Virus record (IMG/VR): IMGVR_UViG_3300026521_000471
Coordinates: 62,001 to 126,000 of that record
Length of the DNA: 64,000 nt
Reading direction: 5' to 3' (one strand)
The notes under the pieces are model-generated. The model saw nothing but the letters and a program-made list of their open reading frames with translations, did no database searches and was not told where the DNA came from. The position numbers and the translations under genes are program-made. Shown in pieces: positions 21,398-54,805 of the stretch. Positions within the stretch are counted from its first letter, which is position 1; each line of letters opens with the position of its first letter.

Positions 21398-21410
21398 TTT
21401 TTTATTATAA

Positions 21411-21488: not shown

Positions 21489-21501
21489 TTTACATATCAA
21501 T

Positions 21502-21577: not shown

Positions 21578-21595
21578 CTTCTAATTGTTAAATAT

Positions 21596-21673: not shown

Positions 21674-21675
21674 TT

Positions 21676-21762
21676 GTCGATATGGTGAAATTGGTAAACA
21701 CACTACCTTGAGGGGGTAGCGCCTATTAAGGTTTGAGAGTTCGAATCTCTCTATCGACACCA
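21676..21762 (+). tRNA. tRNA-Leu(GAG)
   Basis: CTACC-TTGAGGG-GGTAG, V arm, CCA. Confidence 0.95.
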
Positions 21763-35867: not shown

Positions 35868-37421
35868 ATGGCTAAAACTAAATTAGTAAATGGTGTTAAA
35901 CTTGATTATGTTGCCGGTTCTTTTGCCAGTTTTGCCAAAATTAATAATTCTAATAAAGAACTGAAAGAAGAAAATATTAAAGATTATATAGGACTTATGA
36001 AATTTATAGAAGGTAAGCTCAAGGGTTATATAAATGTTAGCACTTTATTTAATGCTTATCAAGAAGAAGGGGATGGTCGATCTATAAAAGAACATAATAA
36101 TTTTGGTTATGATAAAGTTTATGCTGATTCTGGTGGATTACAAGTCCTTACAGCAGGTAAAACTATCAATGATGAAGTTAAAGAAAAAGTTTATACAGTC
36201 CAAGCTAAATATTCAGACTATGCTATGACATTTGATGAAATGCCTATAATGATAGCTAAAGACTTAGGTAAAAAATCAAAAATCGGCGATTATGGACAAG
36301 TCTTTGTTGATGAGTTAGTAGAGAAAAATGCGGAATTATCTGCAATGCATATTCAAAAACAAATAGATATGTTTGAATCATTAAATACATCCACTAAAAT
36401 TTTACCAATCATACATGGATATGACATTGATTCATATTTACGTTATGCTAAATCTATTTTTAATAACCTAGATCATATAGGACATCATATTCAAGGGATG
36501 TCTATTGCATCGTTAAGTGGTCATGCGGATAATAAAGTGGGGATAATGAAAGTATTTGACTTTGTGCCAAAGATATTAAATAGTGGTGAGATTAATCCTC
36601 AATATTTAGAACATATTCATTTACTAGGTGTTGCATCTTCACAAAGAATAATACCTATTATTATGATGATTAAAAAAGGATTATTACCAATTAAAACACT
36701 TTCATTTGATAGCACCGCAATAACAAAAGCATACACATTTGGTAGAGCATATCAGACCATAGAAGAATATAAAAATCCGAGGGACTTTAGTACAGAAGTA
36801 ACATTAAAAAGTTATAAAAATAAAGAGTTTCCAAACATAAAACAATTATATCAGAGTATGTATGATACGTTTAAAGATTATGAAAATTTTATGTTTGATG
36901 ATTGGGAAGATATAGCAAAACATTCACCAAATAATGGCGATAAACGGGCTTTAAAAGATCAATATTTGGAAGAAGGCTTAGAATATCAAAGAAAATACTT
37001 ACAGCAAGTAAGGATAGCTAATCTATATCATCATTATACTTATGTTTCCATGCTAGAAGGCTATATTGACGATGAACTTAGTATAACAGAATTGTTTGGT
37101 TATAATAAAACTGTTGAAACTATGATGCAATCATTTGAGAGTGTAAACACACTTGAAGAATTATCAGAAATGTGCGAATATTTTTATAATTTTGCTAAAG
37201 TCGGTCGAACAGATTTAAGAATTAAAAAAGTAAAAACGGTTAAAGAGTTTAAAGAAAAATATGAAGAAGAAGGTATTGATGTATATGCGGAATTAGGTAT
37301 CGACAAAGACGTTGAAATCCTAAGTGAAGAATTAAAAAAACCTTGGATTAAATCTTCAATAAAAAGAGCAAAAGGGGAAGATTATCCTCATGGTGAGGAA
37401 CCAACCAATGCACTTTTTTAA
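35868..37421 (+). CDS. TGT-fold guanine transglycosylase paralog 1 (DpdA-like)
   Basis: YADSGGLQ, FDEMP, HIHLLG, SFDST; ends TNALF*. Confidence 0.8.
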   Translation: MAKTKLVNGVKLDYVAGSFASFAKINNSNKELKEENIKDYIGLMKFIEGKLKGYINVSTLFNAYQEEGDGRSIKEHNNFGYDKVYADSGGLQVLTAGKTINDEVKEKVYTVQAKYSDYAMTFDEMPIMIAKDLGKKSKIGDYGQVFVDELVEKNAELSAMHIQKQIDMFESLNTSTKILPIIHGYDIDSYLRYAKSIFNNLDHIGHHIQGMSIASLSGHADNKVGIMKVFDFVPKILNSGEINPQYLEHIHLLGVASSQRIIPIIMMIKKGLLPIKTLSFDSTAITKAYTFGRAYQTIEEYKNPRDFSTEVTLKSYKNKEFPNIKQLYQSMYDTFKDYENFMFDDWEDIAKHSPNNGDKRALKDQYLEEGLEYQRKYLQQVRIANLYHHYTYVSMLEGYIDDELSITELFGYNKTVETMMQSFESVNTLEELSEMCEYFYNFAKVGRTDLRIKKVKTVKEFKEKYEEEGIDVYAELGIDKDVEILSEELKKPWIKSSIKRAKGEDYPHGEEPTNALF

Positions 37422-37785
37422 TAAAATTAAATCATTTATAAAAGGATTAGAATTAACTAAATTCGATAAAATCTTCTTTATAGGATATATTAGTTTATGG
37501 ATATATTATTTATTTAGTGGAATGAGTTATTTAACTGCTGGCGGTATATTATTAATTCTTGGAGCATGGCTAGTTTTTAAAGGTGAAATTTTTGTTGCAA
37601 CTTTAAACTATGTTATAGCCGATATAATGTGGGTTTTAAATGCTATTAATATAGGTGATAATGAAGGTACTATTTTCATTATAATTGGTATGCTTTTAGG
37701 TATTGCAGCAACTTATAAAATGCAAATTGGATCTTTAGCAAAATCATTAAAAATAGAAAAAAATTGTAAAATAAAACTAAAATAA
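37408..37785 (+). CDS. Membrane protein
   Basis: Multiple hydrophobic segments; start moved to ATG 37408. Confidence 0.6.
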   Translation: MHFFNKIKSFIKGLELTKFDKIFFIGYISLWIYYLFSGMSYLTAGGILLILGAWLVFKGEIFVATLNYVIADIMWVLNAINIGDNEGTIFIIIGMLLGIAATYKMQIGSLAKSLKIEKNCKIKLK

Positions 37786-37797
37786 AAAAGGATTAAT

Positions 37798-38562
37798 ATG
37801 ATACCTATTATGGAAATGTTTGGCCCAACTATACAAGGTGAGGGTGCAAGAAGTGGTGTAATTTCATATTTTTTAAGAGTTGGTGGGTGTAATTTTACTT
37901 GTAAAGGTTTTGGTGTGGCATATACCGATCCTGATGGCAATGAAAAGTTTGGATGTGATAGTTATTATGCCGTTGACCAAAAATTTAAGAAGTCATGGGA
38001 TTTTTTAAACTATAAAGAAATTGTTAATAAAATGAATATAATTCTGAATAAAGGGGCTCATGGTATTTTTAAACCTGATATAATTATAACCGGTGGAGAA
38101 CCACTAATGTATTGGAATAATGAAGACTTTCAAAACGTATTAATTTACTATATATCAAGAGGTTATAAAATCACGATTGAAACTAATGGTAGTATTGATA
38201 TTGATTTCACAAAAGATTATCAAAAAGAAATTATGTTTTCTATGTCGGTTAAATTAAAAAATAGTGGTGAAGCAGAACATAGAAGAATTAATATAAAAAA
38301 TCTTACTAATATACTTGAAAATTCTAAATATAGTTATTTTAAATTTGTTATTGGTAATGATATGAATGATGTAGAAAAAGAAATTATAGATATTTTAGAC
38401 AGCATTCCATATTATACTGATGTTTTTGTAATGCCTATGGGAGAAACTACCGATGGGATTGAAAAACACGCTTTAAAAACTGCTGAATTAGCTATTAAAA
38501 ATAATTGGAAATATAGCGATAGATTACATATTAGATTATGGAATGATAAACCGGGTGTTTAG
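37798..38562 (+). CDS. queE: 7-carboxy-7-deazaguanine synthase QueE (radical SAM)
   Basis: EMFGPTIQGEG, FLRVGGCNFTC...CDS, ITGGEP, IETNG, RLHIRLW. Confidence 0.92.
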   Translation: MIPIMEMFGPTIQGEGARSGVISYFLRVGGCNFTCKGFGVAYTDPDGNEKFGCDSYYAVDQKFKKSWDFLNYKEIVNKMNIILNKGAHGIFKPDIIITGGEPLMYWNNEDFQNVLIYYISRGYKITIETNGSIDIDFTKDYQKEIMFSMSVKLKNSGEAEHRRINIKNLTNILENSKYSYFKFVIGNDMNDVEKEIIDILDSIPYYTDVFVMPMGETTDGIEKHALKTAELAIKNNWKYSDRLHIRLWNDKPGV

Positions 38563-38579
38563 ATTTAAGAGGAAAATAT

Positions 38580-39929
38580 ATGAGTAAATTTAAAAATACA
38601 GAACTAATTGTCGATTATGTTCTTTCAGGATTCGGAGCTTCATTTCGATTAGGCTCACCAAATGAAGCTTACGCTAGAGGTGTTGCAGAAGAATTATTTA
38701 GTTCTACTAAATTTTTAGAATCAGAAACTAGAGGCGATAATATTGAAATGAGTGCATTGTTTAATGCATATACAGAAGATAGAATGGCGGAACAGTTAAA
38801 TGGGTTTAATCTTAATTTAAGAGATCTATATACTGGGGGTATGTATGTTGATTCTGGAGGATTACAGGTTTTAACACAAGGCAAAACTATCGATGAAGAA
38901 ATGAGAAAAAAAATATATAAAACTCAGGCTTCATATGGTGATTTTGCTATGAGTTTTGATGTTATTCCTTCTGAATTTGTAAATGGCGAAAAAATATATT
39001 TTCCGGAGCGAGTAGCTGATGCGGGAACACAAGCTGGAAAAAATTTAATTGAACAAATTAAAGCATTTAAAGAATACAATACCTCTTGTAAAATCATGCC
39101 AATCATTCAAGGATTAGGTGAAAGTGACATGGATTTATATGCTAATAATATGTTTAGCCAACTATCTAAAGATGAATTGGATTATATCACAAGTGTCGCT
39201 TTTGGTGGTGGTACAAGTGGTTTTGAATTTTTAAATAGAATGATGAATGCTCATCATTCAAAAATTTTATCACAAAAAATGAATCATGTGCATTTACTAG
39301 GGATTACAGGCTTTTCTAGACTATTACCGCCTATTATTGCAGCAATGAATGGAATTCTTCCAGATGTTAATAGAATTTCTTTTGATAGTACAACAATATC
39401 AAAGACTTATGTATTAGGGATGGTATGGCCAGAAGTTGAGGATGTTATTTCTGGTAATGTTAAAGCTGGTGCAAGTACATCGTTAGGCAAAGTAAGAAAT
39501 AAAACTGTTGAAGCTCATTATGAAAAAATGTGGAATTGGTGGAAAAAAAATCCTAATAATATTTTTGATGGTGTTGAAGATCTTTTAGAACATTCCGTAT
39601 ATAACTCTAAAGGTTTTACAACTGGATACCAACAAACAGAAAATTTATCATTAGAAGATGGAATCAAAACAATTACCCAAAAGCATGTTTTTGTATATTA
39701 TAACACATATAATTTTATCAATATTTTAAAAGGATATATAAAAGGCGAGGTACCATTATCCAACTTGTTAGGTAAGAATCAAAAAGGTATTTTCTTATTT
39801 GAACAATTAGAGAGTATTACTGATGTAAACGATTATAATGAGTGGTTTATAGATGTTAAAAAACATATAAAGATTGATGTTCCATCTGTTGGTTCAGATA
39901 AAGGACAATCAACAAATATTTTATTTTAG
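38580..39929 (+). CDS. TGT-fold transglycosylase paralog 2
   Basis: LFNAYTE, YVDSGGLQ, FDVIP, HVHLLG, SFDST; ends TNILF*. Confidence 0.8.
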   Translation: MSKFKNTELIVDYVLSGFGASFRLGSPNEAYARGVAEELFSSTKFLESETRGDNIEMSALFNAYTEDRMAEQLNGFNLNLRDLYTGGMYVDSGGLQVLTQGKTIDEEMRKKIYKTQASYGDFAMSFDVIPSEFVNGEKIYFPERVADAGTQAGKNLIEQIKAFKEYNTSCKIMPIIQGLGESDMDLYANNMFSQLSKDELDYITSVAFGGGTSGFEFLNRMMNAHHSKILSQKMNHVHLLGITGFSRLLPPIIAAMNGILPDVNRISFDSTTISKTYVLGMVWPEVEDVISGNVKAGASTSLGKVRNKTVEAHYEKMWNWWKKNPNNIFDGVEDLLEHSVYNSKGFTTGYQQTENLSLEDGIKTITQKHVFVYYNTYNFINILKGYIKGEVPLSNLLGKNQKGIFLFEQLESITDVNDYNEWFIDVKKHIKIDVPSVGSDKGQSTNILF

Positions 39930-41519
39930 GTGATATTGATGGCTACAAGTAAAAAACAAATAAATGGTATTACTTTAGATTATGTTTCTGGTTCATTACG
40001 ACCTTTCTTAAAAATAGGTTCTGGTAGTACAGATGCTATAAAGCATGAGGGAGTTGAAGATTTTAAGAAACTACTAGATTGGTCTCAAACACATTTAAAA
40101 GGTTACTTTGTACTATCAACACTTTTTAATGCGTTTCAAGAAGAAAAAGATGGTAAAGTATTAAAAGAAGAAAACAAACTTAATCATGACGCAATTTATG
40201 CCGATTCTGGTGGATTACAAGTCCTCACTAGAGGATTAGAAATTACAGATGATATTAAATTGAAAGTATATGATACTCAAGCTAAATATTGTGATTTTGC
40301 CATGACATTCGATGAAATGCCTTTAAAAGTTATAGAAAATCAAGATCAATTTGGTAAATCAATTATTGATAATAACAGGGTTGTTCATATCAAAGAAATG
40401 GTAGGTATATCTGCAAAAAATTCAGCAGCACATATTCAACAGCAAATTGATGTATTTGAAAAACTTAAGACGAATACAAAAATATTACCTATTGTACATG
40501 GTTTTAGTGAAGAAACATATATCGAATACGCCGAAACAATTATGAAAAACTTACATAATATTAAGGAACATATCCAAGGTATGGCTATTGCTTCATTATC
40601 AGCATCAGCGGATAATAAGGTAGGTATAATGAAAGTTTTTGATTATGTACCAACTCTTATGAATGCTAAAGAGATAAAAGAAGAGTATAGACAACATGTC
40701 CACTTACTAGGAGTAGCTTCATATCAAAGAATAATTCCAGTTATGATGATGGCTAAAAAGGGTATTTTTGATACCGTTAAAAGAATTTCATTTGATAGTA
40801 CTGCACTTACAAAATCATATACATTTGGGCGTGTATATGCTAGTGTTGAAGAAATGAAAAATCCTAAAGATTATGAACCTCTTTTATCATTAAATCATTG
40901 GAAAGATCCTCATTCAAAAAATATTAGACAATTTTATAATAACGTACACAATTTACTCAAAGACTACCCCGATTATATTTTTGAAGATGTTGAAGATTTG
41001 ATGAACCATTCACAAAATAATGGTGAGAAATTAAAAGTTAGTGAACAATTTAAAAAATATGGAACTGAATATGAAAGAAAATATCTGGCTCAAGTGAGAT
41101 ATAATAGCATTTATAATATGATTCAGTATTTAAGTGTTATTGAAGCTTATTTAGAAGATGAACTGGCTGTAGCTGATATATTCTCATATAATGGGACAGT
41201 AAGATTTATGTTTGAAACCTTTGAGCATAATGCACATACAAAAGAAGATTTTAAAGAGATGTGTAACTATTTTTATACAACGGCTACAACAGGAAGAACG
41301 AACCTCAATTATATAATAATGGACACTTTAGAAGAATTTGAAAAAAGTGAATATGGAAATAATCCCGATGTAAAATCGGACCCATTAGCCGAATTAGGAG
41401 TAGGGGAAGTACCAAAACATGAAAAAGGGTATGTTCGACCAGATCTTTTAGCTCGACGAGCTAAAAGAGCACCTAGAGATTTTAAAGAAGATGGAAATCC
41501 ATCAGATTCTCTTTTTTAA
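39930..41519 (+). CDS. TGT-fold transglycosylase paralog 3
   Basis: YADSGGLQ, FDEMP, HVHLLG, SFDST; closest to paralog 1; ends SDSLF*. Confidence 0.8.
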   Translation: MILMATSKKQINGITLDYVSGSLRPFLKIGSGSTDAIKHEGVEDFKKLLDWSQTHLKGYFVLSTLFNAFQEEKDGKVLKEENKLNHDAIYADSGGLQVLTRGLEITDDIKLKVYDTQAKYCDFAMTFDEMPLKVIENQDQFGKSIIDNNRVVHIKEMVGISAKNSAAHIQQQIDVFEKLKTNTKILPIVHGFSEETYIEYAETIMKNLHNIKEHIQGMAIASLSASADNKVGIMKVFDYVPTLMNAKEIKEEYRQHVHLLGVASYQRIIPVMMMAKKGIFDTVKRISFDSTALTKSYTFGRVYASVEEMKNPKDYEPLLSLNHWKDPHSKNIRQFYNNVHNLLKDYPDYIFEDVEDLMNHSQNNGEKLKVSEQFKKYGTEYERKYLAQVRYNSIYNMIQYLSVIEAYLEDELAVADIFSYNGTVRFMFETFEHNAHTKEDFKEMCNYFYTTATTGRTNLNYIIMDTLEEFEKSEYGNNPDVKSDPLAELGVGEVPKHEKGYVRPDLLARRAKRAPRDFKEDGNPSDSLF

Positions 41520-41559
41520 AAATGTAAAATTAATATAAAATATTAAAAAAAGGATATAT

Positions 41560-42594
41560 ATGAAAATAGCTATTATTGGTGCTGGATGGTATGGATGTCA
41601 TATAGCTTCAATTTTAAAATCGTACGCTGTTGATATAACTATTTTTGAACAAGAAGATGATATTTTTAAACATGCATCATCAAAAAATCAAAATAGACTT
41701 CATTTGGGTTTTCATTATCCTAGATCTTCAATAACACGACTGCAGTCAAAACAGGGTTTTAAAAATTTTAAAAAAGAGTATGATTTTTGTTGTAGTCCTA
41801 TAAGTAAAAATTTCTATGCAGTAGATAATCAACGATCTTTAATAGACTTTGAAACATTTAAAATTATTATGGAACACGATCTGGATTTTAAAATAAAAGA
41901 TAATACGGACAGACTACAAAACTTATCTGGATTAATTAATACTAAGGAAGAAGTTATTAATTTTGATATTGCCATAGAACACTTTAAAGAATTATTGTCA
42001 GGCGATTTAAGATTAAACTGTAAAATTGAAAATGCAGATATTCAAAATTGTGATGATTATGTCCAAATTAAAGATGAAAATTTTGATTATTTAATCAACT
42101 GTACTTGGGCTACTTTTAGAAATAATTTCAATATTGACGCTTTTTATGAATCATGTATTGTTTTACTTTATAAAACATCACATCACGAAAATGATTTCGC
42201 TATAACTATTATGGATGGTGAATTTGTATCTCTATTTCCATATACTGAAAACGGGGTGTACACACTCACATCTGTAAAAAATACAGTTCTAAAAAGAGAT
42301 AAAAGTTATAAAAAAATTATAGATTTTCAAAATAATTTATCGGATGATTTTATACAAGAAATTATTAAAAAAATGGAAGCTGAAATGATATATTATTATC
42401 CAGATTTTTTAATAGATTTTGAATTTAAAGACTATTTTCTTACAACAAAAAGTAAACTTAATGTACAAACTGATTCTCGTGAAGTGGTAGTAAAACATAA
42501 TAATCGAGAGATTTTTGTATTTTCTGGAAAAATAGATACTATCTTTGAAGCTGAAAAAGAAATTTTAAAAATACTAGGATTAAAAAATGAATAA
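41560..42594 (+). CDS. FAD-dependent oxidoreductase (DAO-like)
   Basis: IAIIGAGWYG, ASSKNQNRLHLGFHYPRS, SGKID. Confidence 0.85.
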   Translation: MKIAIIGAGWYGCHIASILKSYAVDITIFEQEDDIFKHASSKNQNRLHLGFHYPRSSITRLQSKQGFKNFKKEYDFCCSPISKNFYAVDNQRSLIDFETFKIIMEHDLDFKIKDNTDRLQNLSGLINTKEEVINFDIAIEHFKELLSGDLRLNCKIENADIQNCDDYVQIKDENFDYLINCTWATFRNNFNIDAFYESCIVLLYKTSHHENDFAITIMDGEFVSLFPYTENGVYTLTSVKNTVLKRDKSYKKIIDFQNNLSDDFIQEIIKKMEAEMIYYYPDFLIDFEFKDYFLTTKSKLNVQTDSREVVVKHNNREIFVFSGKIDTIFEAEKEILKILGLKNE

Positions 42595-43255
42595 TAAAAT
42601 ATGTATCATTGGCGGTACCTCCAATATTTCAAAATCATTTATAAAAATGGTTGAAAATAATTTTGATATTATAACGGTTGGTAAAAGCTCTAATAATGAT
42701 ATTGAATTTGATATTAATAATGGAAATTTTAATAATATTAATAAAATACCTTTAAATTGTTCGTATTATTTAATTGCTGCAGGCATATTATACCCAAAAA
42801 AGATTATCGAACAAACAAATAATGAGATTTTAAATAGTATATCTTTAAATCTTTTATTTCCGACTTATTTAATTGAACAGATATTAGATATTAATGAAGA
42901 TGTAAGAATTGTAGTGGTTGGTTCTGAATCGGGTAAAAAAGGTTCATATGACACAACTTACTTTTTAAGTAAAGCAGCTTTAAAATCTTATATACAAGAA
43001 AAACATATTAAATCTAAAAACCAATCACTAAATATGATTGCTCCATCGGTTATACTGGATACAAAAATGACACAAGATCGGGACGATTTAGAAGAAGTAT
43101 TAGAAAGAGCAAAAGATTTACCAAAAGAAAGATATTTAATGAGTGAAGAAGTCGCTAAACTTATTTATTATTTATTTTTTGAGGATTCAGGGTATATTAA
43201 TAACGAAGTTATTAATATGAATGGTGGTAAATTTGCAAGAATGAATTACAGATAA
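42587..43255 (+). CDS. Short-chain dehydrogenase/reductase
   Basis: IIGGTSNIS Rossmann, S and YxxxK (YFLSK). Confidence 0.8.
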   Translation: MNNKICIIGGTSNISKSFIKMVENNFDIITVGKSSNNDIEFDINNGNFNNINKIPLNCSYYLIAAGILYPKKIIEQTNNEILNSISLNLLFPTYLIEQILDINEDVRIVVVGSESGKKGSYDTTYFLSKAALKSYIQEKHIKSKNQSLNMIAPSVILDTKMTQDRDDLEEVLERAKDLPKERYLMSEEVAKLIYYLFFEDSGYINNEVINMNGGKFARMNYR

Positions 43256-43265
43256 GGAAAGGGAT

Positions 43266-44705
43266 ATGAAACAATATAAAAAACGAATAGCATTTATTAT
43301 ATCATCACAACATTTTATAATACATGGTGGTATAGGAACATTTGCACGAGCTTTCGTAGATATGTGCAATGATTTAGATTATAAAGTCGACTATATAATG
43401 GATAAAGCTCCGGCTAATAAAGATTTAGAAGAATACATACTTAAAAATAATGGAAATATTTTATACCCTCACAAAGACTTGTCTTATAAAGGTCATAATG
43501 CAAGGTTTGTTTTCTCAGATAGTATGAATTTAGAAAAAACTATAAACTTTAGGGATTCGTTTTTACAATCATTTAAGAATGCAATTTATGATGTTATCAT
43601 CATAAATTCTAATGATGCTATATTACCAATATTAATAACCGGGATTCAGAGTATTGCACCGACAATAGTATATTCTCATAGTGGTGAACTAGTTTTTGTA
43701 AATGAAAAACATGATCCAGTCTTTAAAAAGTCTGTAGTCGAAATTTATAAACAATTAATGTGTTTGGATGATATTATAATCGGAACTCATAGTGACCATA
43801 ATAAAGCTATCATAGAAAATAACTTTCCAGATATAAATGTCAAAACATTACCTTTAAGGATAGCTGATAAGGGGTTATTAGACTCCATAGATCCGAATAT
43901 TGAAAAAAATGGCGTGTTATTTGTAGGTCGTTATGAACCAAGAAAAAATCCCGACACATTTTTAAAAGGTGTTTCTGAAGCAGGACTAAAAATCTTAATA
44001 ATGACAAATGATAACGGGGCTAAAAAATTTGAAGCTAAACTTTTAGCTTTAGGTTATGAAAAATTTAATGAAAGAAAAAATGATCCACTGCAAAATGATG
44101 GAAAAGTATATGAAATAAAATTTGGTATATTTGGAAAAGAAAAAGAAGCTTTCATGAATAAAGCTAGGCTTTCTTTCCAACCTGCTATTTTAGAATCATA
44201 TGCATATAGTACAGTTGAAGCATTACATTGTTGTAGAACCGTAGTACTTGATGAATATTCGTGGGGTAAAAATTTCAAAGGGTTAGCATATTTTACAAAT
44301 AAAAAGACAATGAGTGAAGATTTAAAACGTTGGCATGATGAAGATTATGATATGGAACAGCAATTAGAAAAAATGCGAAAAATTTATAATGATGGTGCGC
44401 AGTATTGGACAGATATATTTGAAGAATATTCCGCTTTAAATTTAAACCCTAAAAAAGTAACAAAAACTAAGTTATACAAATTATTGGATGAACAGAAGGA
44501 TTTTGTATCCATTTCATATATACTTGAAACGCTACTAAATAGAGATTTAAATTGGATAGCTATTGATGATGCTGAAATTTTTTATAAAATTATTAATGAA
44601 TTGGATATTGTTCATACTGATAAAGAAACTTTTATAGCATTAAAAAATAAAAAATTCAAATTTAATATATCGGACGAAGTTGATGGTTCCGAATTATTAT
44701 TTTAA
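43266..44705 (+). CDS. GT-B glycosyltransferase
   Basis: HGGIGTF, LFVGRYEPRKN, ESYAYSTVEAL; ends SELLF*. Confidence 0.8.
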   Translation: MKQYKKRIAFIISSQHFIIHGGIGTFARAFVDMCNDLDYKVDYIMDKAPANKDLEEYILKNNGNILYPHKDLSYKGHNARFVFSDSMNLEKTINFRDSFLQSFKNAIYDVIIINSNDAILPILITGIQSIAPTIVYSHSGELVFVNEKHDPVFKKSVVEIYKQLMCLDDIIIGTHSDHNKAIIENNFPDINVKTLPLRIADKGLLDSIDPNIEKNGVLFVGRYEPRKNPDTFLKGVSEAGLKILIMTNDNGAKKFEAKLLALGYEKFNERKNDPLQNDGKVYEIKFGIFGKEKEAFMNKARLSFQPAILESYAYSTVEALHCCRTVVLDEYSWGKNFKGLAYFTNKKTMSEDLKRWHDEDYDMEQQLEKMRKIYNDGAQYWTDIFEEYSALNLNPKKVTKTKLYKLLDEQKDFVSISYILETLLNRDLNWIAIDDAEIFYKIINELDIVHTDKETFIALKNKKFKFNISDEVDGSELLF

Positions 44706-44743
44706 AATGATATTTGTATAATACATATAAAAAGGTTAAAAAA

Positions 44744-45493
44744 ATGAAAATATACCAAATCGAAATAACAAATGCATGTCAATTTAGATGTGATTACTGC
44801 CCTAGAACAACAGCTATGACTAGAAAAGTAGGCTCTATGTCTAATGAAACGATTAACAGAATAGCTGATGTACTAACTAGTGATTCAATTCGACTTCACC
44901 ACTATGGCGAAAGTTTAATTGAGTTGGATAAAACTCTTTATGCGATTAAAGCATTAAAAAATAAAAACCCAGAATTGGTTATAGAATTAAATACAAATGG
45001 TGAGTACTTAACCCCAGAAACGACAGATAAACTATTTGAGGCCGGCCTTTCAAAAGTTAATTTATCATATCATTTCCCACCAAGTATTAAACACTTAAAA
45101 AATATTGATCCAAAATATAGAGAACGAATTGAAGTTATGAAAATAGCCCACTTATCTGAAATTGAAAAGTATAAAAATGAGTTAAAAGAAGTAAAAGAAA
45201 TAGGATACAAAGTAATCTTAAAACAATTAAGAGACTTAGGTCAAGTTAATGCAGATAGTGCAGGAAAAGGTAATGCATGGAAAGAATGTTCTTTTATAAA
45301 AAATAATGAATTCGTAGTATTATGGGATGGACGTATTGTCACTTGTTGCGAAGTATTTGATGGTGAACCAGAAGAAATACTAGGATCAATTTTTGATGAC
45401 TCTTTACCAGAAAAAAATAAATATATTTCTAAATGTGCTACTTGTATGGGTTATGGAAATGGCGATATTGAAACTGAAAAAATAAATATTTAA
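44744..45493 (+). CDS. Radical SAM protein with SPASM/Twitch-like C-terminus
   Basis: EITNACQFRCDYC, HHYGES, C..WDG..VTCC...C..C; start moved to ATG 44744. Confidence 0.85.
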   Translation: MKIYQIEITNACQFRCDYCPRTTAMTRKVGSMSNETINRIADVLTSDSIRLHHYGESLIELDKTLYAIKALKNKNPELVIELNTNGEYLTPETTDKLFEAGLSKVNLSYHFPPSIKHLKNIDPKYRERIEVMKIAHLSEIEKYKNELKEVKEIGYKVILKQLRDLGQVNADSAGKGNAWKECSFIKNNEFVVLWDGRIVTCCEVFDGEPEEILGSIFDDSLPEKNKYISKCATCMGYGNGDIETEKINI

Positions 45494-45554
45494 GGGTCTA
45501 TTAAGGTATTACTACTTATAATATTTAATACCATTATAAGGAGGTTCATACCAT

Positions 45555-48035
45555 ATGAACGCAGATTTAGAAAAAACACATAGTACCTTACCAGCACACC
45601 CTGTTGGGCAGGCTATAACTACGAAAACCAAAGTAATAGAATTTGCTGAAAAAATCGTAAATTCTCAACTAGGAGAAATTACTGGCGCATTCATAGATAC
45701 CGATACAATGCACCTTTGTTTAAAATATTCAAGTAGTAAAACTGCTCTCACAGCAAAAATGAATAATAAAAAAGAAGATATTTTAACCCCTATTTTCTTA
45801 AAAGCAAAAGGTAAAAATATTCAAGATTATACCTTTAATGTAATTCTAAACTCATCCGATAGTTCAACAAAAATACGTACAGATGCAGCATTAATTGAAC
45901 ATGGAATATTATATGCTATTGAATCAAAATTTTCTGAATCCATTTCAGAAAAAAAGATTATTGATCTATTGAATGAACTTCGTAATAAACACTTGAAAAG
46001 TTTTTATACAGCTTTAAAAGATGACAAACTATATCTTAATTTAGTAAAACAAAATTACATGCCTGTAACAGATATTATAATGACTGGCAAAATAATAGAA
46101 AACCCAATATTACTTGAAGCTTATGCTGATGAAGCATATATAAGTGAGATGGATATTCTGGATATTATAGAAAAATTTGGTCACTATATGCGCTCATACA
46201 AAATGAAACTCAAAGAGGGTGTTAATATCAATGATGATATATTTGATGATAAATCAAAAATGGTAAAGCCACAATTTGTAGAATTTGAATATATATCAGA
46301 CCACCTATATAATTTATTTGATGTAGAAATTGCTGCTAGAATCGATACATCTTCTACCGAACCAATAAGTGCTATTACTCATATGAAATTAGAAAAAGCA
46401 TTTGAAATGATTGGACAAAATGGTAATGTTGAAGATGGTCTAGGTAATAATAGAGCGAAGAAAAAGTGGAATGATCCGGCTAGAATTGGTTTATTTTATG
46501 ATCAACTAAACACTTATATAAATGAAATGGAATCAGGGTCATTTAATCATCATGCCCGTCACGATGCGTACGTAACAGCGACAAAACAACGTACTCTACT
46601 CTATAGACATTTTGAAGAACATATAACTAAAGATTTTGAGATAGATAAAGTTAGTGGTAAGTTGAAAGAAGTAAAAGTTAAATCAATTACTCCTTCAAAC
46701 ACTAAACTTATAATTAGTTCAGGGAATATAACTGTTGCTAATTCGCAGCATTTAGTTGAAAATAGATTACTCATAAAACAGTTGGCTTATTATTTTATCG
46801 AAACATCAATATATGGCAAATTTCATTATAATCCATGGGAACGTGATGAATTAATTAAAGAAGTTTATGATTGCAATAAAGGTTTGATTGATAAAGTTTT
46901 AGATAGATTTAAAGAACATTTTTTATCAAAAAAATTCAAAGATACTGATAAATCAAAAATAAAAGAGATGATTGAAAGATGGGGCGATGATAGAATCCCT
47001 GTAAGATTTGTAACTGAAGAGGGTGATATAATCAACCAATTTATAACTTCATCAAATACAGGTTTATCGGCTACAAAAAACCAAGAAATACTAGCTCCAT
47101 ATAAAACAGAGCAAAATACTATTAGAAGTATTATAGCCGATTATCAGATTGATAATAAAAATATTTCATTAGCATTAACACATAGTGATATTAGAAAAAT
47201 TTCTGCTAAGTTAAATTATAATGAAAATATAATAACATTAGTTAATCTTATATCTGATAATCCTCTGTATTGGGATGATGAACAGAAAAAAACAAAAATC
47301 GATTCTATGAACACAGTTGATTGTACTTATACAGTATCACTCACTAAAAAAATGGCTAAATCCTTTGCCCAATTATTTATTAAGGGTGATGATAAACTTC
47401 AAGATAACTTGTTAAAGTATGAAAAACTTATAGAGACAGAATTGGCTAAAGACGACTACGATGAATTGATACTAAAATCATTTGAAAATAGCGTCGCCGA
47501 TTTAAAAAGCCAATTAGAAGGACATTACAGTCATCATAGACTATTCCATTTGAAAAAATATGCCCACCTACAATTAGAAGCTATTATTAAGGTCATTAAT
47601 GTTTTTGAAAAAGTATATAAAATGGACCAATATAATGAACGTATGAGAGATTTGACAATTGCAAGCAACGATAATACTGTGTTAGTTTCAGAACACGACT
47701 ATACTAAAGGTCGCTTGGTCGGTTTATTCTTTAATGCTTTAAAAATATTAAAAACTAAAAAAGCCAATTATTGGCATGATGAAGATGAAATGATTCGATA
47801 TTTTAAATTGTTTATAGAAACCCTAGAAGATGTCCGATTATTATATAGAAATATTAATGGCGACATTGTAACGGTAACAAAATTATTCAAAGAGACCATA
47901 TATCCTAAGAATATAGATACCAACAATAGTAATATTGTATTATCTACCTTTAAAGTATCAGTAACCGATCTTACAGATAATATTATAAAAGTGTTTAAAT
48001 CGAAAATAATAAATACTAATCAAAATAATGTATAA
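45555..48035 (+). CDS. Large hypothetical protein (826 aa)
   Basis: Long ORF with its own promoter; no motif I can assign firmly. Confidence 0.75.
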   Translation: MNADLEKTHSTLPAHPVGQAITTKTKVIEFAEKIVNSQLGEITGAFIDTDTMHLCLKYSSSKTALTAKMNNKKEDILTPIFLKAKGKNIQDYTFNVILNSSDSSTKIRTDAALIEHGILYAIESKFSESISEKKIIDLLNELRNKHLKSFYTALKDDKLYLNLVKQNYMPVTDIIMTGKIIENPILLEAYADEAYISEMDILDIIEKFGHYMRSYKMKLKEGVNINDDIFDDKSKMVKPQFVEFEYISDHLYNLFDVEIAARIDTSSTEPISAITHMKLEKAFEMIGQNGNVEDGLGNNRAKKKWNDPARIGLFYDQLNTYINEMESGSFNHHARHDAYVTATKQRTLLYRHFEEHITKDFEIDKVSGKLKEVKVKSITPSNTKLIISSGNITVANSQHLVENRLLIKQLAYYFIETSIYGKFHYNPWERDELIKEVYDCNKGLIDKVLDRFKEHFLSKKFKDTDKSKIKEMIERWGDDRIPVRFVTEEGDIINQFITSSNTGLSATKNQEILAPYKTEQNTIRSIIADYQIDNKNISLALTHSDIRKISAKLNYNENIITLVNLISDNPLYWDDEQKKTKIDSMNTVDCTYTVSLTKKMAKSFAQLFIKGDDKLQDNLLKYEKLIETELAKDDYDELILKSFENSVADLKSQLEGHYSHHRLFHLKKYAHLQLEAIIKVINVFEKVYKMDQYNERMRDLTIASNDNTVLVSEHDYTKGRLVGLFFNALKILKTKKANYWHDEDEMIRYFKLFIETLEDVRLLYRNINGDIVTVTKLFKETIYPKNIDTNNSNIVLSTFKVSVTDLTDNIIKVFKSKIINTNQNNV

Positions 48036-48059
48036 TTATTAATAAAAAGGATAACTGAT

Positions 48060-48413
48060 ATGGCTGTTAAGCAATTAAATAATTTTGTATGGATTACAAC
48101 GAGTTTTGAGGGGTTTCATAAATACCCCGATGCTCCTGAAGAGGTTTCATTTTTAAAAGAAAGACACAGACATATATTCAAACTTAAAATTTGGATTGAA
48201 GTATTTCATAATGATAGAGACATTGAATTTATTCTTTTTAAAAGATTTATTGATTCATTAATAGTTGAAAATGAAATGGATTATAAATCATGTGAAATGA
48301 TTTCTGATGATCTCGCAAATTGGATTAATGAAAAATTTCCAAAGCGGACTATAAAAATTGAAGTTTCTGAAGATGGAGAAAATGGCTCTTATAAAGAATA
48401 TGAAGCTATATAG
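48060..48413 (+). CDS. QueD-like T-fold protein
   Basis: FEGFH.YP.AP, HRHIF, DRDIEF, SCEM, SEDGENG phage QueD-paralog pattern. Confidence 0.75.
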   Translation: MAVKQLNNFVWITTSFEGFHKYPDAPEEVSFLKERHRHIFKLKIWIEVFHNDRDIEFILFKRFIDSLIVENEMDYKSCEMISDDLANWINEKFPKRTIKIEVSEDGENGSYKEYEAI

Positions 48414-48421
48414 GTTTAGAC

Positions 48422-49510
48422 ATGAAAAATATTTTTTTAGTTGATATTGAATATATACCAACCCGTTATTCTTCACAATGGAAAGAATGGATTCCAGAAG
48501 AAATTAATAAATCCGAGTTATTAAATTGTGTTGTAATAGATGGTCCGGATAACAAAGATTATGAAACAACCCCTGGTGGGTTTTTCAATTTCTTTGAAAC
48601 TAATTTATATAAAATGGTGCAAGGGCAAAAAATAGCAAAACTCTTTATGGAAGATAAAGTCAATGATGGTGATATATTCTTATTTACTGATGGTTGGCAT
48701 CCTGCAGTAATATCTTTAAGACAAATGATAAATCTCTCTAAGAAAAAAATTAAAATGATGGGTATGTTTCATGCTGGGGCTTATGACCCAGCAGATATAT
48801 TGGGACAAACTTGCAGAGATAATTTTTTAAATATTGAATTAGGTTACTTAGATTGCTTAGATACGGCTATATTTGCTACTAAATTTAGTAAACAACTTAT
48901 GCTTGACAATCTTATTATTGATGATGTGAAAAAAAATGAATTAGATAAAAAAATGGTAGTGACAGGTTTCCCATATAATTTTGATCATTTATATCAAAGT
49001 AAAAATAAATCTAACAATATTTTATTTCCTCACAGAATAAGTCCAGAAAAACATATTGAACTTTTTAGAAAAAAAGATAAAATATCAGAACAATACAACA
49101 CTATTGAGGAATTACTTCCCAATTTTGAAGCAATTGTTACTTTAGAAATAACAAAAAATAAAGATGAGTTTCATGAATTATTAGCTAACTCAAAATATAG
49201 TGTTAGTTTCGCAGATCAAGAAACTTGGGGCATTTCAGTATTTGAATCATTAATGAGTGGATGCTTGCCAATTATACCAAATAAATTAAGTTATAATGAA
49301 ATGTATTCAGATGAACTTAAATATGATCCATATGATGAAAATGGTAATGAAGATATATATAACTGGCCTATAAAAGTTAAAAAAGTTATTGACCGTTTAG
49401 AACAATTAACACTAGAAGATAAACAAAAAATAATAGATAAAAATATAAAATATTTAAAAGAATATTATTGTACTTTTGAGTATATTTTAGATTTACTAAT
49501 TATAGGATAG
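48422..49510 (+). CDS. Glycosyltransferase (commonly paired with the QueD-like gene in phages)
   Basis: TRYSSQW, DGWHP, HAGAYDP, FPHRISPEK, QETWGIS..E. Confidence 0.8.
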   Translation: MKNIFLVDIEYIPTRYSSQWKEWIPEEINKSELLNCVVIDGPDNKDYETTPGGFFNFFETNLYKMVQGQKIAKLFMEDKVNDGDIFLFTDGWHPAVISLRQMINLSKKKIKMMGMFHAGAYDPADILGQTCRDNFLNIELGYLDCLDTAIFATKFSKQLMLDNLIIDDVKKNELDKKMVVTGFPYNFDHLYQSKNKSNNILFPHRISPEKHIELFRKKDKISEQYNTIEELLPNFEAIVTLEITKNKDEFHELLANSKYSVSFADQETWGISVFESLMSGCLPIIPNKLSYNEMYSDELKYDPYDENGNEDIYNWPIKVKKVIDRLEQLTLEDKQKIIDKNIKYLKEYYCTFEYILDLLIIG

Positions 49511-49803
49511 AGTCCATCTAATTTCAAAGTTAAATTCAAGACTATTATCGAATACAGGATATGAATTTAACTTAATTTTTATTAAATTCCTTTTGCAACG
49601 TCTATTTAGATTTAACTCCATTAAATCTAATTTTTAATAGCTTTATAATTCACCCCCCACTTATTTTCTTATAAATATTTTTTAATATTTCTACTATTTT
49701 ATCATAATATCATTTATCATATTAAAATAGGATTTTGACTTTTTTTGTATAATATTATCTATACAAATTCACTCAATAAAAGAGTTACCAAGGATAAAAA
49801 ATT

Positions 49804-51350
49804 ATGACACAAAATAATATTTCAAATATTAAATCTACTATCGAGAATGATCCAAAAGGATTGAAATTAGAGCTTGTAATTTCGGGCATACCTTAGGCTA
49901 CTTTAAATTAAGAAGTCAGCACGATGATTTATTTAGAATTACAGCATTATCTTTACGAAAATGCCTAGACTATATTGAAGAAAAATTACCAGGCAATGTT
50001 TTATTACAGGGTCTATTCAATGCATACACAGAGGAAGTCATGGCTCGTAGAGCAAGTGAAGAATCAATTAATGTACCGTTCAAATCTATCTTCCCACATG
50101 GATTGCATGCTGATTCAGGTGGTTTACAAATGGTTACTTTAGGTAAGGGTACTGTTGAAAAAGAAGATAGACTTAAAATCTATGAAACACAAAGTAAGTA
50201 TGCTGATTATGCTATGAGCTTTGATGAAATTCCTGCAGTATTTATTGATGATGTTAAATACTATATGCAAAGTCTAATTGAAGAAAAAGGTATTGAGTCA
50301 GGTAATAATCTCAGGGAACAATTTGATTATTTTGCTACAACCGATTCAACTTGTAGAATTGTACCCATCGTACAAGGTTGGGGGATAAAAGACACAAATA
50401 CATTCGCTAAAGGATTATTTGCACAATTTACTGATGAAGAAAAAAGCAAAATGGATATTTTTGCTTCGGGTTTCCAAAGTACATCTGTTTATGCATCGGC
50501 GAAAAGGGCATTCGACTTATACAGAGTTGAGTCAATACCTGAAAATGCTAAACAACATCTGCACCTTTTAGGGGTAACAGGTTTTAAAAGGTTAATACCT
50601 ATTTTGATACTAATCAAAAATAATATGACTGAGGGTTTAAAATCTCTATCATTTGATTCGGTTACACTTTCTATGAGTTATGTTATGGGTGGCACTGTTC
50701 CTTCTGTTGATGATTTTAAAAATGGTAAGGGCAAAATAAAATTAGGTAAAAAACGTAATAAAGATGTGGATGCTTATTGGCAAGAAATTTTTGATTTTTG
50801 GAAAGACGATCCAGAATTCCCTTTTGATGATTTAAATGATATGATGGAACATAGCTATTATAATTCAAATGGATTAACTAGTGGTTACCAACAATATGAG
50901 CATTTTTTACAAGCTGATGAAGATGGCAATTTTACTAAAAAAAATAAAAAAATAGCTGATTTTCATTTTGCTAAAGTATTGAAGCAAGAGCAGTATTATA
51001 TTTTATATCAAGTTCATAATTATGTACAAATATTAGAATCCTTTTTAGAAGATGATATTAAACTTGAGCATATTTTTAAAGGTAAAGATCTAGTATTATT
51101 CCAAGCTTTAGAAAAAGTTACAACTGATGATGATTTTAATGATTGGTATGAATACCTTAAAAAATCTACAGGTTTTTCAATTTTAACTATGAATTCTGAA
51201 GCAAAATCATCAGAGGAAACAACTAATTTATTATTTGATGACTCAAATAACGAACCTATAAAAGAAAGAAAAAAACAACCATCTAGAGTAGCTAAAAAAC
51301 CGACTAAAGTAGAAGAAGATAATATTGATGCTATGAATGATTTATTTTAA
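49804..51350 (+). CDS. TGT-fold transglycosylase paralog 4, with a -1 frameshift near 49885-49893
   Basis: 49804-49896 encodes LELVISG and the 50040 frame extends upstream through LFNAYTEE, both conserved in the paralogs; HADSGGLQ, FDEIP, HLHLLG, SFDS; ends MNDLF*. Confidence 0.75.
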
Positions 51351-51733: not shown

Positions 51734-52018
51734 ATGAAATATCTTATAATAGAAGAGACCTTATTAATTGCCAAAGTTGAGAAAATATCTCATGGGTTTA
51801 ATTCTACAAGTGTAGTATATAGAAATCCAATTTCCGATAAAGTTTCAGAAACTACTTGGCCTACATATCATGCTAAAAAAATATTATTTGAAACATTTAT
51901 TGATGCAATAGCATATATTATAAAACATTTAGATAAGACATCTAATCTTGAGTTTAAACAACGAGTATTTGAGTATGAGTATATTCTATTAAACAACTAT
52001 CCGGAGAAATTATTATGA
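51734..52018 (+). CDS. Hypothetical protein, C-terminal tag YPEKLL*
   Basis: ORF track. Confidence 0.65.
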   Translation: MKYLIIEETLLIAKVEKISHGFNSTSVVYRNPISDKVSETTWPTYHAKKILFETFIDAIAYIIKHLDKTSNLEFKQRVFEYEYILLNNYPEKLL

Positions 52019-54055: not shown

Positions 54056-54805
54056 ATGTTAGCAAAAGTTACAAAAAAAGTAAAAAATTTCATTCAAAAT
54101 CTAGAAGTTGTTTCTCCTAAAGACTACAACAAATACTTTAATGACATTGCATTTGATATGGGTATAGAAACAAGCGAATTTGATTGTGATATGTCTAATG
54201 CTATTGATAAACATCGTGACACTTTAGAAGAAAATACATCTCTTGCTATAAATGCTATTAATACTCGTGATGTAAAAGCTCTAGAACTTGTAAACGATAA
54301 TATGAGTAAATTAAAAAAAGAAATTATAGAACTTAAAGAATTAGTATATAAAGACGAATTAACTCAAGTATATAATAGAAAATATATTACTGATAATATA
54401 TTATCTGGAGATTATTTTAAAATTAATGGTCTTATGGTTATTCTTGACATGAATAATCTTAAAAAAATCAATGATACCATTGGACATGTAGCTGGAGATA
54501 AGGCTATAATCTATCTTTCTAAAGAACTAAAGAATTTAACAGAAAATACTATTAGATTTGGAGGAGATGAATTTCTATTATTTTTTGATGACATTGATTT
54601 AGAAGATTGCTTCTTAAAACTACATAAATTACGTGAAAAAATAAGTACCAAAATATTTCGCTTTAAAGGTGTTGAATTTAATATTAGTTTTGCTTTCGCT
54701 GCTATAGCTATCGACCCATCAAAAAAATTCAAAGAAACTCTTGAAATTGTAGATAATGAAATGTATAAAGATAAAGAAAGAGTTAAAAATATGTTAAACA
54801 AATAA
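54056..54805 (+). CDS. Diguanylate cyclase (coiled coil + GGDEF)
   Basis: DELTQVYNR, D..NLKKINDTIGHVAGD, RFGGDEF, ADxxMY-like VDNEMYKDK. Confidence 0.9.
   Translation: MLAKVTKKVKNFIQNLEVVSPKDYNKYFNDIAFDMGIETSEFDCDMSNAIDKHRDTLEENTSLAINAINTRDVKALELVNDNMSKLKKEIIELKELVYKDELTQVYNRKYITDNILSGDYFKINGLMVILDMNNLKKINDTIGHVAGDKAIIYLSKELKNLTENTIRFGGDEFLLFFDDIDLEDCFLKLHKLREKISTKIFRFKGVEFNISFAFAAIAIDPSKKFKETLEIVDNEMYKDKERVKNMLNK

Follow-up and report, generated by a model that had tools for sequence, protein, structure and literature searches.

Why do unrelated enzymes in the genome of a giant hydrothermal-vent phage, each predicted to modify DNA, end in the same few residues? The window analysed is a 64,000-nt stretch (positions 62,001 to 126,000) of the 224-kb contig IMGVR_UViG_3300026521_000471. 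A sequence-only reading of it had reported that four TGT paralogs and one glycosyltransferase (GT) end in a shared "LF" motif. It had called the motif convergent and proposed that it docks these enzymes on a T4-type gp45 clamp, coupling base exchange and glycosylation to newly made DNA. The five reported tails are all present in the sequence, so the observation holds, but its count was too low. The interpretation is only partly supported: a convergently shared docking peptide on unrelated enzymes fits the comparative evidence, but the identity of the clamp as gp45 does not follow from it.

The tagged enzymes

The features are listed in Table 1. Six paralogs, not four, carry the tail, the last two being encoded just past the end of the window. 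Of the first paralog, only the tail lies inside the range given in the sequence-only reading (37400-51350). The terminal residues follow [ST][NDE]xLF-COOH, except that position 1 is M in paralog 4.

Table 1. Features of the modification cluster (window positions unless marked as genome positions)
Position	Strand	Feature	Supporting data
35868..37421	+	DpdA2-family (TGT-fold) paralog 1, 517 aa, long C-terminal extension	phrog_10773 E=1e-51; DSGGLQ, FDE, HLLGV and SFDS motifs kept; homologous to nt-1, pf16 and Moby DpdA2
37404..37418	+	Terminal TNALF-COOH of paralog 1	Orthologs end PSDGLF, PADSLF or PTNNLF
37798..38562	+	QueE-like radical-SAM enzyme (7-carboxy-7-deazaguanine synthase), a precursor enzyme without the tag	Pfam Fer4_12 and Radical_SAM; 46% identical to the Campylobacter phage protein annotated as CDG synthase
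38580..39929	+	DpdA2-family paralog 2, 449 aa, short tail	phrog_10773 E=7e-51; AlphaFold2 model, TGT as the top fold matches
39912..39926	+	Terminal TNILF-COOH of paralog 2, in a segment predicted to be disordered	Residues 440-449 have pLDDT below 50
39930..41519	+	DpdA2-family paralog 3, 529 aa, long C-terminal extension	phrog_10773 E=4e-61
41502..41516	+	Terminal SDSLF-COOH of paralog 3	Translation
43266..44705	+	GT1-family glycosyltransferase, 479 aa, unrelated to the DpdA2 fold	Pfam PF00534; homologs in T4-like phages lie next to DpdA2
44688..44702	+	Terminal SELLF-COOH of the GT	Homologs elsewhere end SLESLFA, FSELFG, FDDLFG, NLDAFFG or ISFDDIF
45555-48035		Uncharacterised protein in the middle of the cluster, 826 aa	No family match
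49804..51350	+	DpdA2-family paralog 4; main frame 50040-51350 (436 aa), conserved N-terminus in another frame at 49804-49893 (5' frameshift)	phrog_10773 E=2.5e-39; frame analysis against orthologs; same sequence in three DNA assemblies
51219..51236	+	Internal second copy of the tag (TTNLLF), followed by acidic residues and a basic linker	Conserved in orthologs as ASTSLFDED, VMQTIFGDD and similar
51333..51347	+	Terminal MNDLF-COOH of paralog 4	Translation
genome 126668-127999		Further paralog, ends TDVLF	phrog_10773
genome 128012-129322		Further paralog, ends SNILF	phrog_10773

All six paralogs match phrog_10773 (E=1e-36 to 1e-61), and tblastn searches connect them to the DpdA2 proteins of nt-1, Moby and pf16. 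The Pfam TGT family itself does not hit, as reported for DpdA2 (PMC6884629), but the top 50 listed Foldseek matches of the paralog 2 model in the PDB are all tRNA-guanine transglycosylases. The catalytic-site motifs (DSGG, FD and the SFDS aspartates) are invariant in all six paralogs and in 43 clade members. DpdA2 of the Vibrio phages nt-1 and VH7D and ArcS2 of nt-1 were shown experimentally to put preQ0/preQ1 and G+ into DNA (PMC6884629, PMC10516641), and DpdA2 and ArcS2 act on DNA in vivo (PMC10516641). Insertion of a 7-deazaguanine into DNA by DpdA2 is shown for nt-1 and VH7D only, and for the paralogs described here it is inferred from homology. The sequence-only reading took the tails to argue for DNA rather than tRNA as the substrate. 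However, the window also encodes all four GUN-anticodon tRNAs, so a tRNA role for some paralog is not excluded. The GT is unrelated to the paralogs and matches Glycos_transf_1 at 27.6 bits against a cut-off of 26.4.

In the whole contig, 9 of 357 ORFs end in LF, where 1.6 are expected from composition. These include 7 of 7 of the six paralogs plus the GT, against 2 of 350 others (Fisher p = 2.6e-13), although this overstates the case because the paralogs are not independent. Conservation is the better evidence. The paralogs are ancient and only 26-47% identical, and their linkers are unalignable and differ in length by up to about 70 residues, yet the tag is kept at the extreme C-terminus despite extensions of 50-70 residues. 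Among 120 database homologs 64 end in LF, and most of the others end in an [ST]L[DE]xFF-type tail. The tag has been duplicated in two lineages. The tail is also predicted to be flexible: in the AlphaFold2 model of paralog 2 (mean pLDDT 90.7), only the last 10 residues fall below pLDDT 50.

Tails in T4-like relatives and in the sister genome

The C-termini of T4/RB69 gp43, gp55 and gp33 (SLDFLFG, SLDFLYEAND, TLDFLL) are the established, interchangeable gp45-binding epitopes and sit on variable linkers (PMC2988020). In T4-like phages with a recognisable gp45 clamp, homologs of DpdA2, the GT and ArcS2/DUF5591 carry tails of the class [ST]L[DE]x[FL]F, the class found on the phage's own gp43 DNA polymerase. 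In 16 T4-like genomes with both genes, the DpdA2 tail belongs to the same motif class as the gp43 tail in about 12 (STLEGFFS and ATLEGFFS; SLEDLFA and TLEDLFS; SLDDLFG and SLEDLFGW). Same-genome pairs score higher than shuffled pairs (16.9 against 14.8, permutation p = 0.04). The correspondence is not universal, as the DpdA2 proteins of nt-1, pf16 and two further T4-like genomes (G009/G017) lack a polymerase-like tail, while nt-1 ArcS2 has one. In one complete T4-like genome (G003), only 3 of 222 ORFs match the tail pattern: gp43, DpdA2 and the adjacent GT. DpdA2 and the GT are also the two C-termini most similar to that of gp43 among the other 211 ORFs scored.

Three unrelated enzyme families switch tail class together by lineage, having ..LF-COOH in the clade of this phage. 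These are DpdA2, GT1 (SLESLFA elsewhere, SELLF here) and ArcS2/DUF5591. In the last family nt-1 VPFG_00169 ends in NSLANFF, while its homolog (36% identity) in the syntenic 306-kb sister genome G019 ends in PSNSLF.

In G019 the same tag is also found on an RNase HII (Pfam E=7e-23, tail TTDILF). Of its close homologs, 27 of 28 keep ..LF. Among more distant homologs 32 of 92 end in Q..LF, at least one of them in a bacterial chromosome context. This is the QL[SD]LF beta-clamp-binding motif type (PMC9690074) of Pol II, Pol IV, UmuC, Hda, MutS and others, which is a pentapeptide with L-F at positions 4-5, often at the very C-terminus. All seven local tails share the terminal L-F, but position 1 is S/T/M rather than Q and position 2 is N/D/E rather than hydrophobic. 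In some members a Q lies two residues further upstream (GQSTNILF; RNase HII NQKTTDILF). The local tails do not fit the T4 class either, as the L-[DE] core is missing and nothing follows the F. Only the S/T, the polar position and the hydrophobic-F ending correspond.

The sequence-only reading had proposed examining the phage's own polymerase, late sigma factor and gp33. No gp45, gp44/62, intact gp43, gp55 or gp33 homolog was found in the 224-kb contig, where the polymerase is seen only as PolB fragments without the tag. In G019 a gp55 homolog is present but does not end in the motif. No gp45, gp44/62 or DnaN gene was found in the 224 kb or in the 306 kb of G019, both incomplete records. For gp45 and gp44/62, the searches used Pfam, phmmer, a 17-sequence gp45 HMM over six frames, and hhalign. 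The same queries hit at 1e-27 to 1e-55 in other T4-like genomes, where gp44 and gp45 were easily found.

Possible docking partners

The explanation favored here, with moderate confidence, is that the tail is a short linear docking peptide on a flexible linker which tethers the enzymes working on DNA itself to the sliding clamp left on newly replicated DNA. In this view the clients are the six DpdA2 paralogs and the GT, plus ArcS2/DUF5591 and RNase HII in the sister genome, and guanine-to-7-deazaguanine exchange and later decoration would follow the replication fork. Enzymes that make soluble precursors (QueE, oxidoreductases, radical-SAM enzymes) lack the tag, as this model expects. Against it count the lack of a clamp or clamp-loader gene of either type in the two incomplete contigs, the departure of the local motif from both the bacterial and the T4 consensus, the untagged PolB fragments and G019 gp55, and the T4-like DpdA2 proteins without a polymerase-like tail. 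What the analysis shows is that the motif exists, is conserved, lies in a predicted disordered tail and occurs on unrelated families, and that these families carry the tail of their own DNA polymerase in T4-like relatives and that of the RNase HII in this clade. That the partner is a clamp, which clamp it is, and binding itself are inferred; one complex prediction gave no verdict. A beta/DnaN-type clamp, probably that of the host, is tentatively preferred because the tail has the C-terminal LF of bacterial clamp-binding motifs, because of the Q..LF endings of RNase HII relatives, and because no phage clamp or clamp loader was found. Should this be correct, a distantly T4-like phage would have given up (or never had) the gp45/gp44-62 system and re-tuned the docking peptides of a whole tool-set to ride the host clamp. 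The change from SLExFF-type to ..LF-COOH tails would then record a clamp switch, and 7-deazaguanine hypermodification in phages would more generally be a clamp-coupled post-replicative process. This broader scenario is possible but rather unlikely on present evidence.

Docking on a phage-encoded gp45-type clamp, as originally proposed, is less likely but not excluded. The clade is distantly T4-like: G019 encodes homologs of gp55, gp46, gp47, uvsX, the major capsid protein, portal and terminase, and an N-terminal piece of gp43. The local DpdA2 tail is positionally homologous to the gp43-like tails of T4-like DpdA2 proteins, sharing S/T at position -6/-5, a polar or acidic residue at -4 and the hydrophobic-F ending. 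Against this stand the failed searches for gp45 and its loader, the untagged gp55 of G019, and a strict ..LF-COOH ending resembling bacterial motifs and shared with an RNase HII of bacterial type. Another hub, such as the gp32-like SSB, the helicase, the 826-aa protein or the paralogs themselves as hetero-oligomers, which would give a modification factory independent of the clamp, is improbable. Acidic tails ending in an aromatic residue do mediate partner binding by SSB and T7 gp2.5/gp4, the cluster contains the large uncharacterised protein, and TGT enzymes are dimers (PMC6884629). However, tails in T4-like relatives copy the clamp epitope of the polymerase rather than an SSB tail, RNase HII is not part of the modification pathway, and GT and ArcS2 homologs keep such tails in phages that lack the 826-aa protein. 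A sorting or turnover signal (degron, capsid packaging or compartment targeting) is very unlikely given the specific link to polymerase and RNase HII tails and the restriction of the tag to DNA-acting enzymes, although C-terminal tagging seems to be a habit of this phage. An inherited ending without function, coincidental on the GT, can be almost dismissed. Six of the seven carriers are paralogs and F is a common last residue in this AT-rich genome (36 of 357 ORFs), but neutral evolution would predict random C-termini among orthologs, which is not what is seen, and the tag recurs on the GT, ArcS2 and RNase HII families.

The proposed arrangement has the same tool-belt logic as the bacterial beta-clamp-binding motif. 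It differs from the T4 one in that its clients are DNA-modification enzymes, not polymerase or transcription factors, and from the bacterial one in that the carriers are phage enzymes. A comparable logic is found in eukaryotes, where the PIP box of DNMT1 couples maintenance methylation to replication through PCNA, and in the PIP boxes of archaeal RNase HII and eukaryotic RNase H2B: a DNA-modifying or DNA-processing enzyme is recruited to freshly replicated DNA through a clamp-interaction peptide. There the clamp family and motif are different, while here the predicted chemistry is transglycosylation and glycosylation in a virus. No paper describing clamp motifs on DpdA enzymes was found, and the studies of nt-1 and VH7D, as far as they were searched, mention neither the C-terminal tails nor a clamp. 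In those phages a single DpdA2 is present rather than six.

Other sequence features

The T4-type late promoters assumed in the sequence-only reading were not supported by counts: TATAAATA occurs 27 times against 28 expected by chance. However, 22 of the 27 lie on the coding strand, several sit about 25-30 nt upstream of starts, and the relative does encode a gp55 homolog. An rIIA-like protein also ends in ELF, which counts against the clamp-docking explanation. Two other C-terminal tags are shared within the genome. One, ..LPxx(V/L)x(D/N)(L/I/M)F(I/L/V)F, is found on 7 unrelated proteins, and the other, ..(Y/F)PExx(I/L/V), on dozens of small ORFs.

The hypermodification cluster and its C-terminal tails

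The window is bases 62001-126000 of a viral contig of 224,467 bp with 27.9% G+C, and near-identical sequence occurs in hydrothermal-vent and epibiont metagenomes. Between 35.8 and 51.4 kb of the window there is a guanine-hypermodification cluster. Four of its ORFs match phrog_10773. The cluster also contains precursor-type enzymes (a QueE-like radical-SAM enzyme, an FAD oxidoreductase, a short-chain dehydrogenase and a radical-SAM/SPASM protein), an 826-aa protein of unknown function and two glycosyltransferase-like ORFs, one of them a GT1 enzyme that matches Pfam PF00534 above the cut-off. Two further phrog_10773 paralogs were found just past the window end. The phage therefore has six paralogs, all with intact active-site motifs; these might serve different sequence contexts or different bases.

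The family is DpdA2. Its members hit the proteins of phages nt-1, pf16 and Moby. DpdA2 was defined on the nt-1 protein, and phage DpdA2 enzymes insert preQ0/preQ1 into DNA (PMC6884629, PMC10516641). An AlphaFold2 model of paralog 2 (pLDDT 90.7, pTM 0.90) has tRNA-guanine transglycosylases as all of its top 50 listed PDB matches. The DSGG, FD and SFDS motifs of the active site are kept in all six paralogs, although these are only 26-47% identical to each other. In paralog 4 the conserved N-terminus is in a different frame from the rest of the gene, and about two extra bases sit at the junction relative to orthologs. The sequence is identical in three DNA assemblies, so this is a real frameshift, a truncated protein starting at 50040, or recoding.

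All six paralogs and the GT1 enzyme end in [ST/M][NDE]xLF-COOH. The sequence-only reading had described such tails on four paralogs and one glycosyltransferase, and this observation is confirmed. In the whole contig 9 of 357 ORFs end in LF, against 1.6 expected, and seven of those nine are these enzymes (Fisher p = 2.6e-13, with the caveat that paralogs are not independent). One other protein with such an ending is rIIA-like and terminates in ..NKELF. The linkers before the tag are unalignable and differ by up to about 70 residues, and the last ten residues are the only low-confidence part of the paralog 2 model. Among 120 database homologs of paralog 2, 64 end in LF. The internal second copy in paralog 4 is conserved in its orthologs, and another lineage has its own internal copy. 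The motif is therefore real, is under selection and has the anatomy of a short linear motif. The enzymes expected to work on soluble precursors (QueE, the oxidoreductases, radical-SAM) have no tag, and the second, weak GT-like ORF also lacks it.

Coordinates of the features in the focal contig and in related contigs (L001, L005 and L009 are separately numbered stretches; G019 is the syntenic IMG/VR contig, G003 and G004 are from T4-like phages)
Sequence	Coordinates	Strand	Feature
Window	35868-37421		phrog_10773 ORF, paralog 1
Window	37798-38562		QueE-like radical-SAM enzyme
Window	38580-39929		phrog_10773 ORF, paralog 2
Window	39930-41519		phrog_10773 ORF, paralog 3
Window	43266-44705		GT1 enzyme
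Window	48422-49510		Second, weak GT-like ORF
Window	49804-49893		Conserved N-terminus of paralog 4 (MTQNN...LVISGIP), in a different frame
Window	49851-51350		Frame of the rest of the paralog 4 gene
Window	50040-51350		phrog_10773 ORF, paralog 4
Window	51219-51236		Internal second copy of the tag in paralog 4
Genome	126668-127999 (L005:2668-3999)		DpdA2 paralog, 443 aa, ends TDVLF
Genome	128012-129322 (L005:4012-5322)		DpdA2 paralog, 436 aa, ends SNILF
Window	2573-3424		PolB fragment, motifs B/C
Genome	11479-12120		PolB fragment
G019	246953-248692; 257123-257830; 40534-41187(-); 23737-23961(-)		Family-B polymerase pieces and short DnaE-like fragments (finger domain, palm)
Window	3830-5131		433-aa protein, tail ..FSQIFESVNI
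Window	5779-10430 and 19226-21762		Two tRNA arrays
Window	13026-15212; 54056-54805; 32364-34214; 59726-61351; 52641-54005		Host-like accessory genes (listed in the text in this order)
Window	25128-26732		Protein with the second shared C-terminal tag
Genome	6918-7442; 10238-10996; 158864-159418; 197838-198305; 206338-207081	-	Proteins with the second shared C-terminal tag
Genome	217292-217636	+	Protein with the second shared C-terminal tag
Window	567-899; 890-1198; 51734-52018		Examples of small ORFs ending in the PE-type tail
L001	8421-10022(-); 12131-13246; 17055-19406		Examples of small ORFs ending in the PE-type tail
Genome	198576-200702 (L009:2576-4702)	-	rIIA-like protein, ends ..NKELF
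G003	117268-119881	-	GT homolog immediately adjacent to DpdA2
G004	75187-77763	+	GT homolog immediately adjacent to DpdA2

Tails of homologs in T4-like phages and in the sister contig

The more distant DpdA2 homologs, of the size typical for T4-like phages, do not end in LF but in SLEGFFA, LDKFFV, TLDNFFV, SLEALFGD and similar. T4 gp43 ends SLDFLFG, gp55 ends SLDFLYEAND and gp33 ends TLDFLL. The tails of DpdA2 and gp43 were compared within the same genome for 3 isolates and 13 distinct IMG/VR contigs (a 14th contig, G017, duplicates G009). About 12 of the 16 share the motif class, often nearly letter for letter: STLEGFFS/ATLEGFFS, SLEDLFA/TLEDLFS, TLEDFFS/TLEAFFG, DLEDFF/SLDDFF and, in Moby, SLDDLFG/SLEDLFGW. 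Same-genome pairs score above shuffled pairings (permutation p = 0.04). The exceptions are nt-1, pf16 and G009/G017.

In the complete T4-like genome G003 (162,860 bp, 222 ORFs), where gp44, gp45 and gp62 are readily detected, the tail pattern occurs in exactly three ORFs: the DNA polymerase, DpdA2, and a homolog of the window's GT that sits next to DpdA2. DpdA2 and the GT are also the two C-termini most similar to that of gp43 among the other 211 ORFs scored. GT homologs elsewhere end SLESLFA, FSELFG, FDDLFG or GIDLFNFA. In T4-like phages the GT homolog is immediately adjacent to DpdA2 and carries the polymerase-type tail, which hints at an undescribed sugar decoration linked to 7-deazaguanine; the word "glycosyl" does not occur in PMC10516641. 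A third unrelated family behaves the same way. The ArcS2 of nt-1 (VPFG_00169, DUF5591), which makes dG+ in DNA (PMC10516641), ends NSLANFF, while nt-1 gp43 ends TLESFFG.

Single-protein scans of IMG/VR for close relatives of the GT and of paralog 2 found nothing, and relatives were recovered only with alignment-based scans. The IMG/VR contig G019 (306,333 bp) is syntenic with the focal contig, its 250-306 kb corresponding to focal 5-113 kb. It encodes distant homologs of T4 gp55, gp46, gp47, uvsX and a gp43 N-terminal piece, and of the Campylobacter-phage major capsid protein, portal and terminase. The clade is therefore a very large, distantly T4-like phage. Only 49 of 361 G019 ORFs have a BLASTP homolog (E below 1e-5) in the focal contig, and these are mostly co-linear over about 55 kb. 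The two records, rated about 85% complete, look like overlapping parts of genomes inferred to be well over 400 kb, so the CheckV completeness is probably an overestimate.

In G019 the ..LF tag is on its four DpdA2 paralogs, on its ArcS2/DUF5591 protein (tail PSNSLF, 36% identical to nt-1 ArcS2) and on an RNase HII (Pfam E=7e-23, tail TTDILF). Among the RNase HII homologs, 27 of 28 close ones keep ..[ST][ST][DN]xLF. Among 92 more distant ones, 35 end in LF and 32 carry Q..LF (KALQPSLF, SLQGTLF, PRQSSLF); one of these was checked and sits in an ordinary bacterial chromosome neighbourhood. That is the QL[SD]LF beta-clamp-binding motif type (PMC9690074). So three modification-enzyme families switch tail class together between T4-like phages and this clade, and in this clade they share the tail of a replication/repair nuclease of bacterial type.

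The candidate clamp and the interpretation of the tails

No clamp or clamp loader was detected in either contig, although both records are incomplete and a phage clamp may lie in unsampled sequence. Pfam searches for the gp45 N and C domains and the three DnaN domains were negative, as were TIGR00663, phmmer searches with T4 and Campylobacter-phage gp45, gp44 and gp62, and hhalign of 179 ORFs of clamp size. A 17-sequence gp45 HMM run against the proteomes and six-frame translations gave a spurious 170-aa ORF as its best hit. A PDB sequence search and an ESM Atlas search with the 228-aa ORF next to the SSB gene were also negative. The same gp45 and gp44/62 queries hit strongly in other T4-like genomes. 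In G019, the ORF in the position where T4 has gene 45, downstream of gp46, turned out to be a DnaE finger-domain fragment.

The family-B polymerase appears only as separate small ORFs tens of kb apart: an N-terminal piece in G019 matching T4 gp43, a piece at about positions 408-490, and a piece with motifs B/C. These and the short DnaE-like fragments in G019 may represent a split polymerase, remnants, or something new. The 433-aa protein was considered as the polymerase thumb carrying the clamp motif, but this was rejected because Campylobacter phage CC_R7 has a homolog of it alongside a full-length polymerase. The 114-aa tag-B protein was considered as gp33; it has a similar size and a hydrophobic tail, but no detectable similarity. 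A complex prediction with two copies of Helicobacter pylori DnaN and the last 35 residues of paralog 2 scored 0.04 against a mark of 0.34, which is no evidence either way, as short peptides and cross-organism pairs seldom pass. A search with the phage chemoreceptor gene, intended to identify the host, gave only distant hits.

The interpretation offered by the sequence-only reading, that the tails tether the modification enzymes to the replication clamp, is partly supported. The analysis itself establishes the tails, their conservation and their joint change between lineages; that they bind a clamp, and which one, is inferred. Clamp docking as the mechanism is considered somewhat more likely than not. 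Given the LF-COOH form, the RNase HII link and the missing loader, a beta-type, probably host, clamp is favoured, but only by inference. That reading had also assumed T4-type late promoters. TATAAATA is not enriched in the window (27 occurrences against 28 expected); it is, however, strongly strand-biased and often about 25-30 nt upstream of start codons, and the premise is therefore plausible but not established. The window encodes 22 tRNAs, including all four GUN-anticodon tRNAs that receive queuosine in cells (Tyr, Asn, two Asp, His). A tRNA substrate for some paralog cannot be excluded, although a DNA-clamp tag on all six would argue for DNA.

Full-text literature searches found papers on DpdA/DpdA2 and on clamp motifs, but none linking the two. 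The closest analogues are the T4 gp43/gp55/gp33 epitope, the bacterial clamp-binding motif and, functionally, DNMT1-PCNA and the PIP-box RNase H2 enzymes. The docking principle is already known, whereas the proposed class of clients is new and the motif is lineage-specific. A clamp-docking tail would give a concrete, testable mechanism for how phage DpdA enzymes gain access to duplex DNA and reach high or complete guanine replacement, both so far unexplained: the enzymes would ride the clamp behind the fork. Bacterial DpdA needs the DpdB ATPase, and heterologous expression of phage DpdA2 alone modifies only about 0.1-0.4% of nucleotides (PMC10516641). This reading predicts which genes in a modification cluster act on DNA (tagged) and which act on soluble precursors (untagged). 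It also flags the conserved DpdA2-adjacent glycosyltransferase as a likely DNA-acting enzyme, and so points to a possible undescribed glycosylated deazaguanine. Finally, it would extend the clamp "tool-belt" to DNA hypermodification, as a viral parallel to DNMT1-PCNA.

Other shared tails and accessory genes

A second shared C-terminal tag, ..(L/I/M/R)Pxx(V/L/I)x(D/N/E/T)(L/I/M)F(I/L/V)F-COOH, is present on seven proteins with no mutual similarity and no family match. Related tails are found in G019 on two ankyrin-repeat proteins (LPEKIQNLLF, LPPKISSLLF). It could be another docking or sorting signal. In addition, dozens of small ORFs (about 80-130 aa), often in tandem arrays, end in (K/H)(Y/F)PE(I/L/Y)(F/Y/W)(I/L/V)-COOH, which makes I the commonest last residue in the genome (53 of 357). 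They are probably a large paralogous family.

The two tRNA arrays explain the ORF-free, higher-GC stretches of the window. The window also carries host-like accessory genes: a full chemoreceptor (NIT + MCP signalling + CZB domains), a GGDEF diguanylate cyclase, aspartyl-tRNA synthetase, GroEL and a nicotinate phosphoribosyltransferase-like protein.
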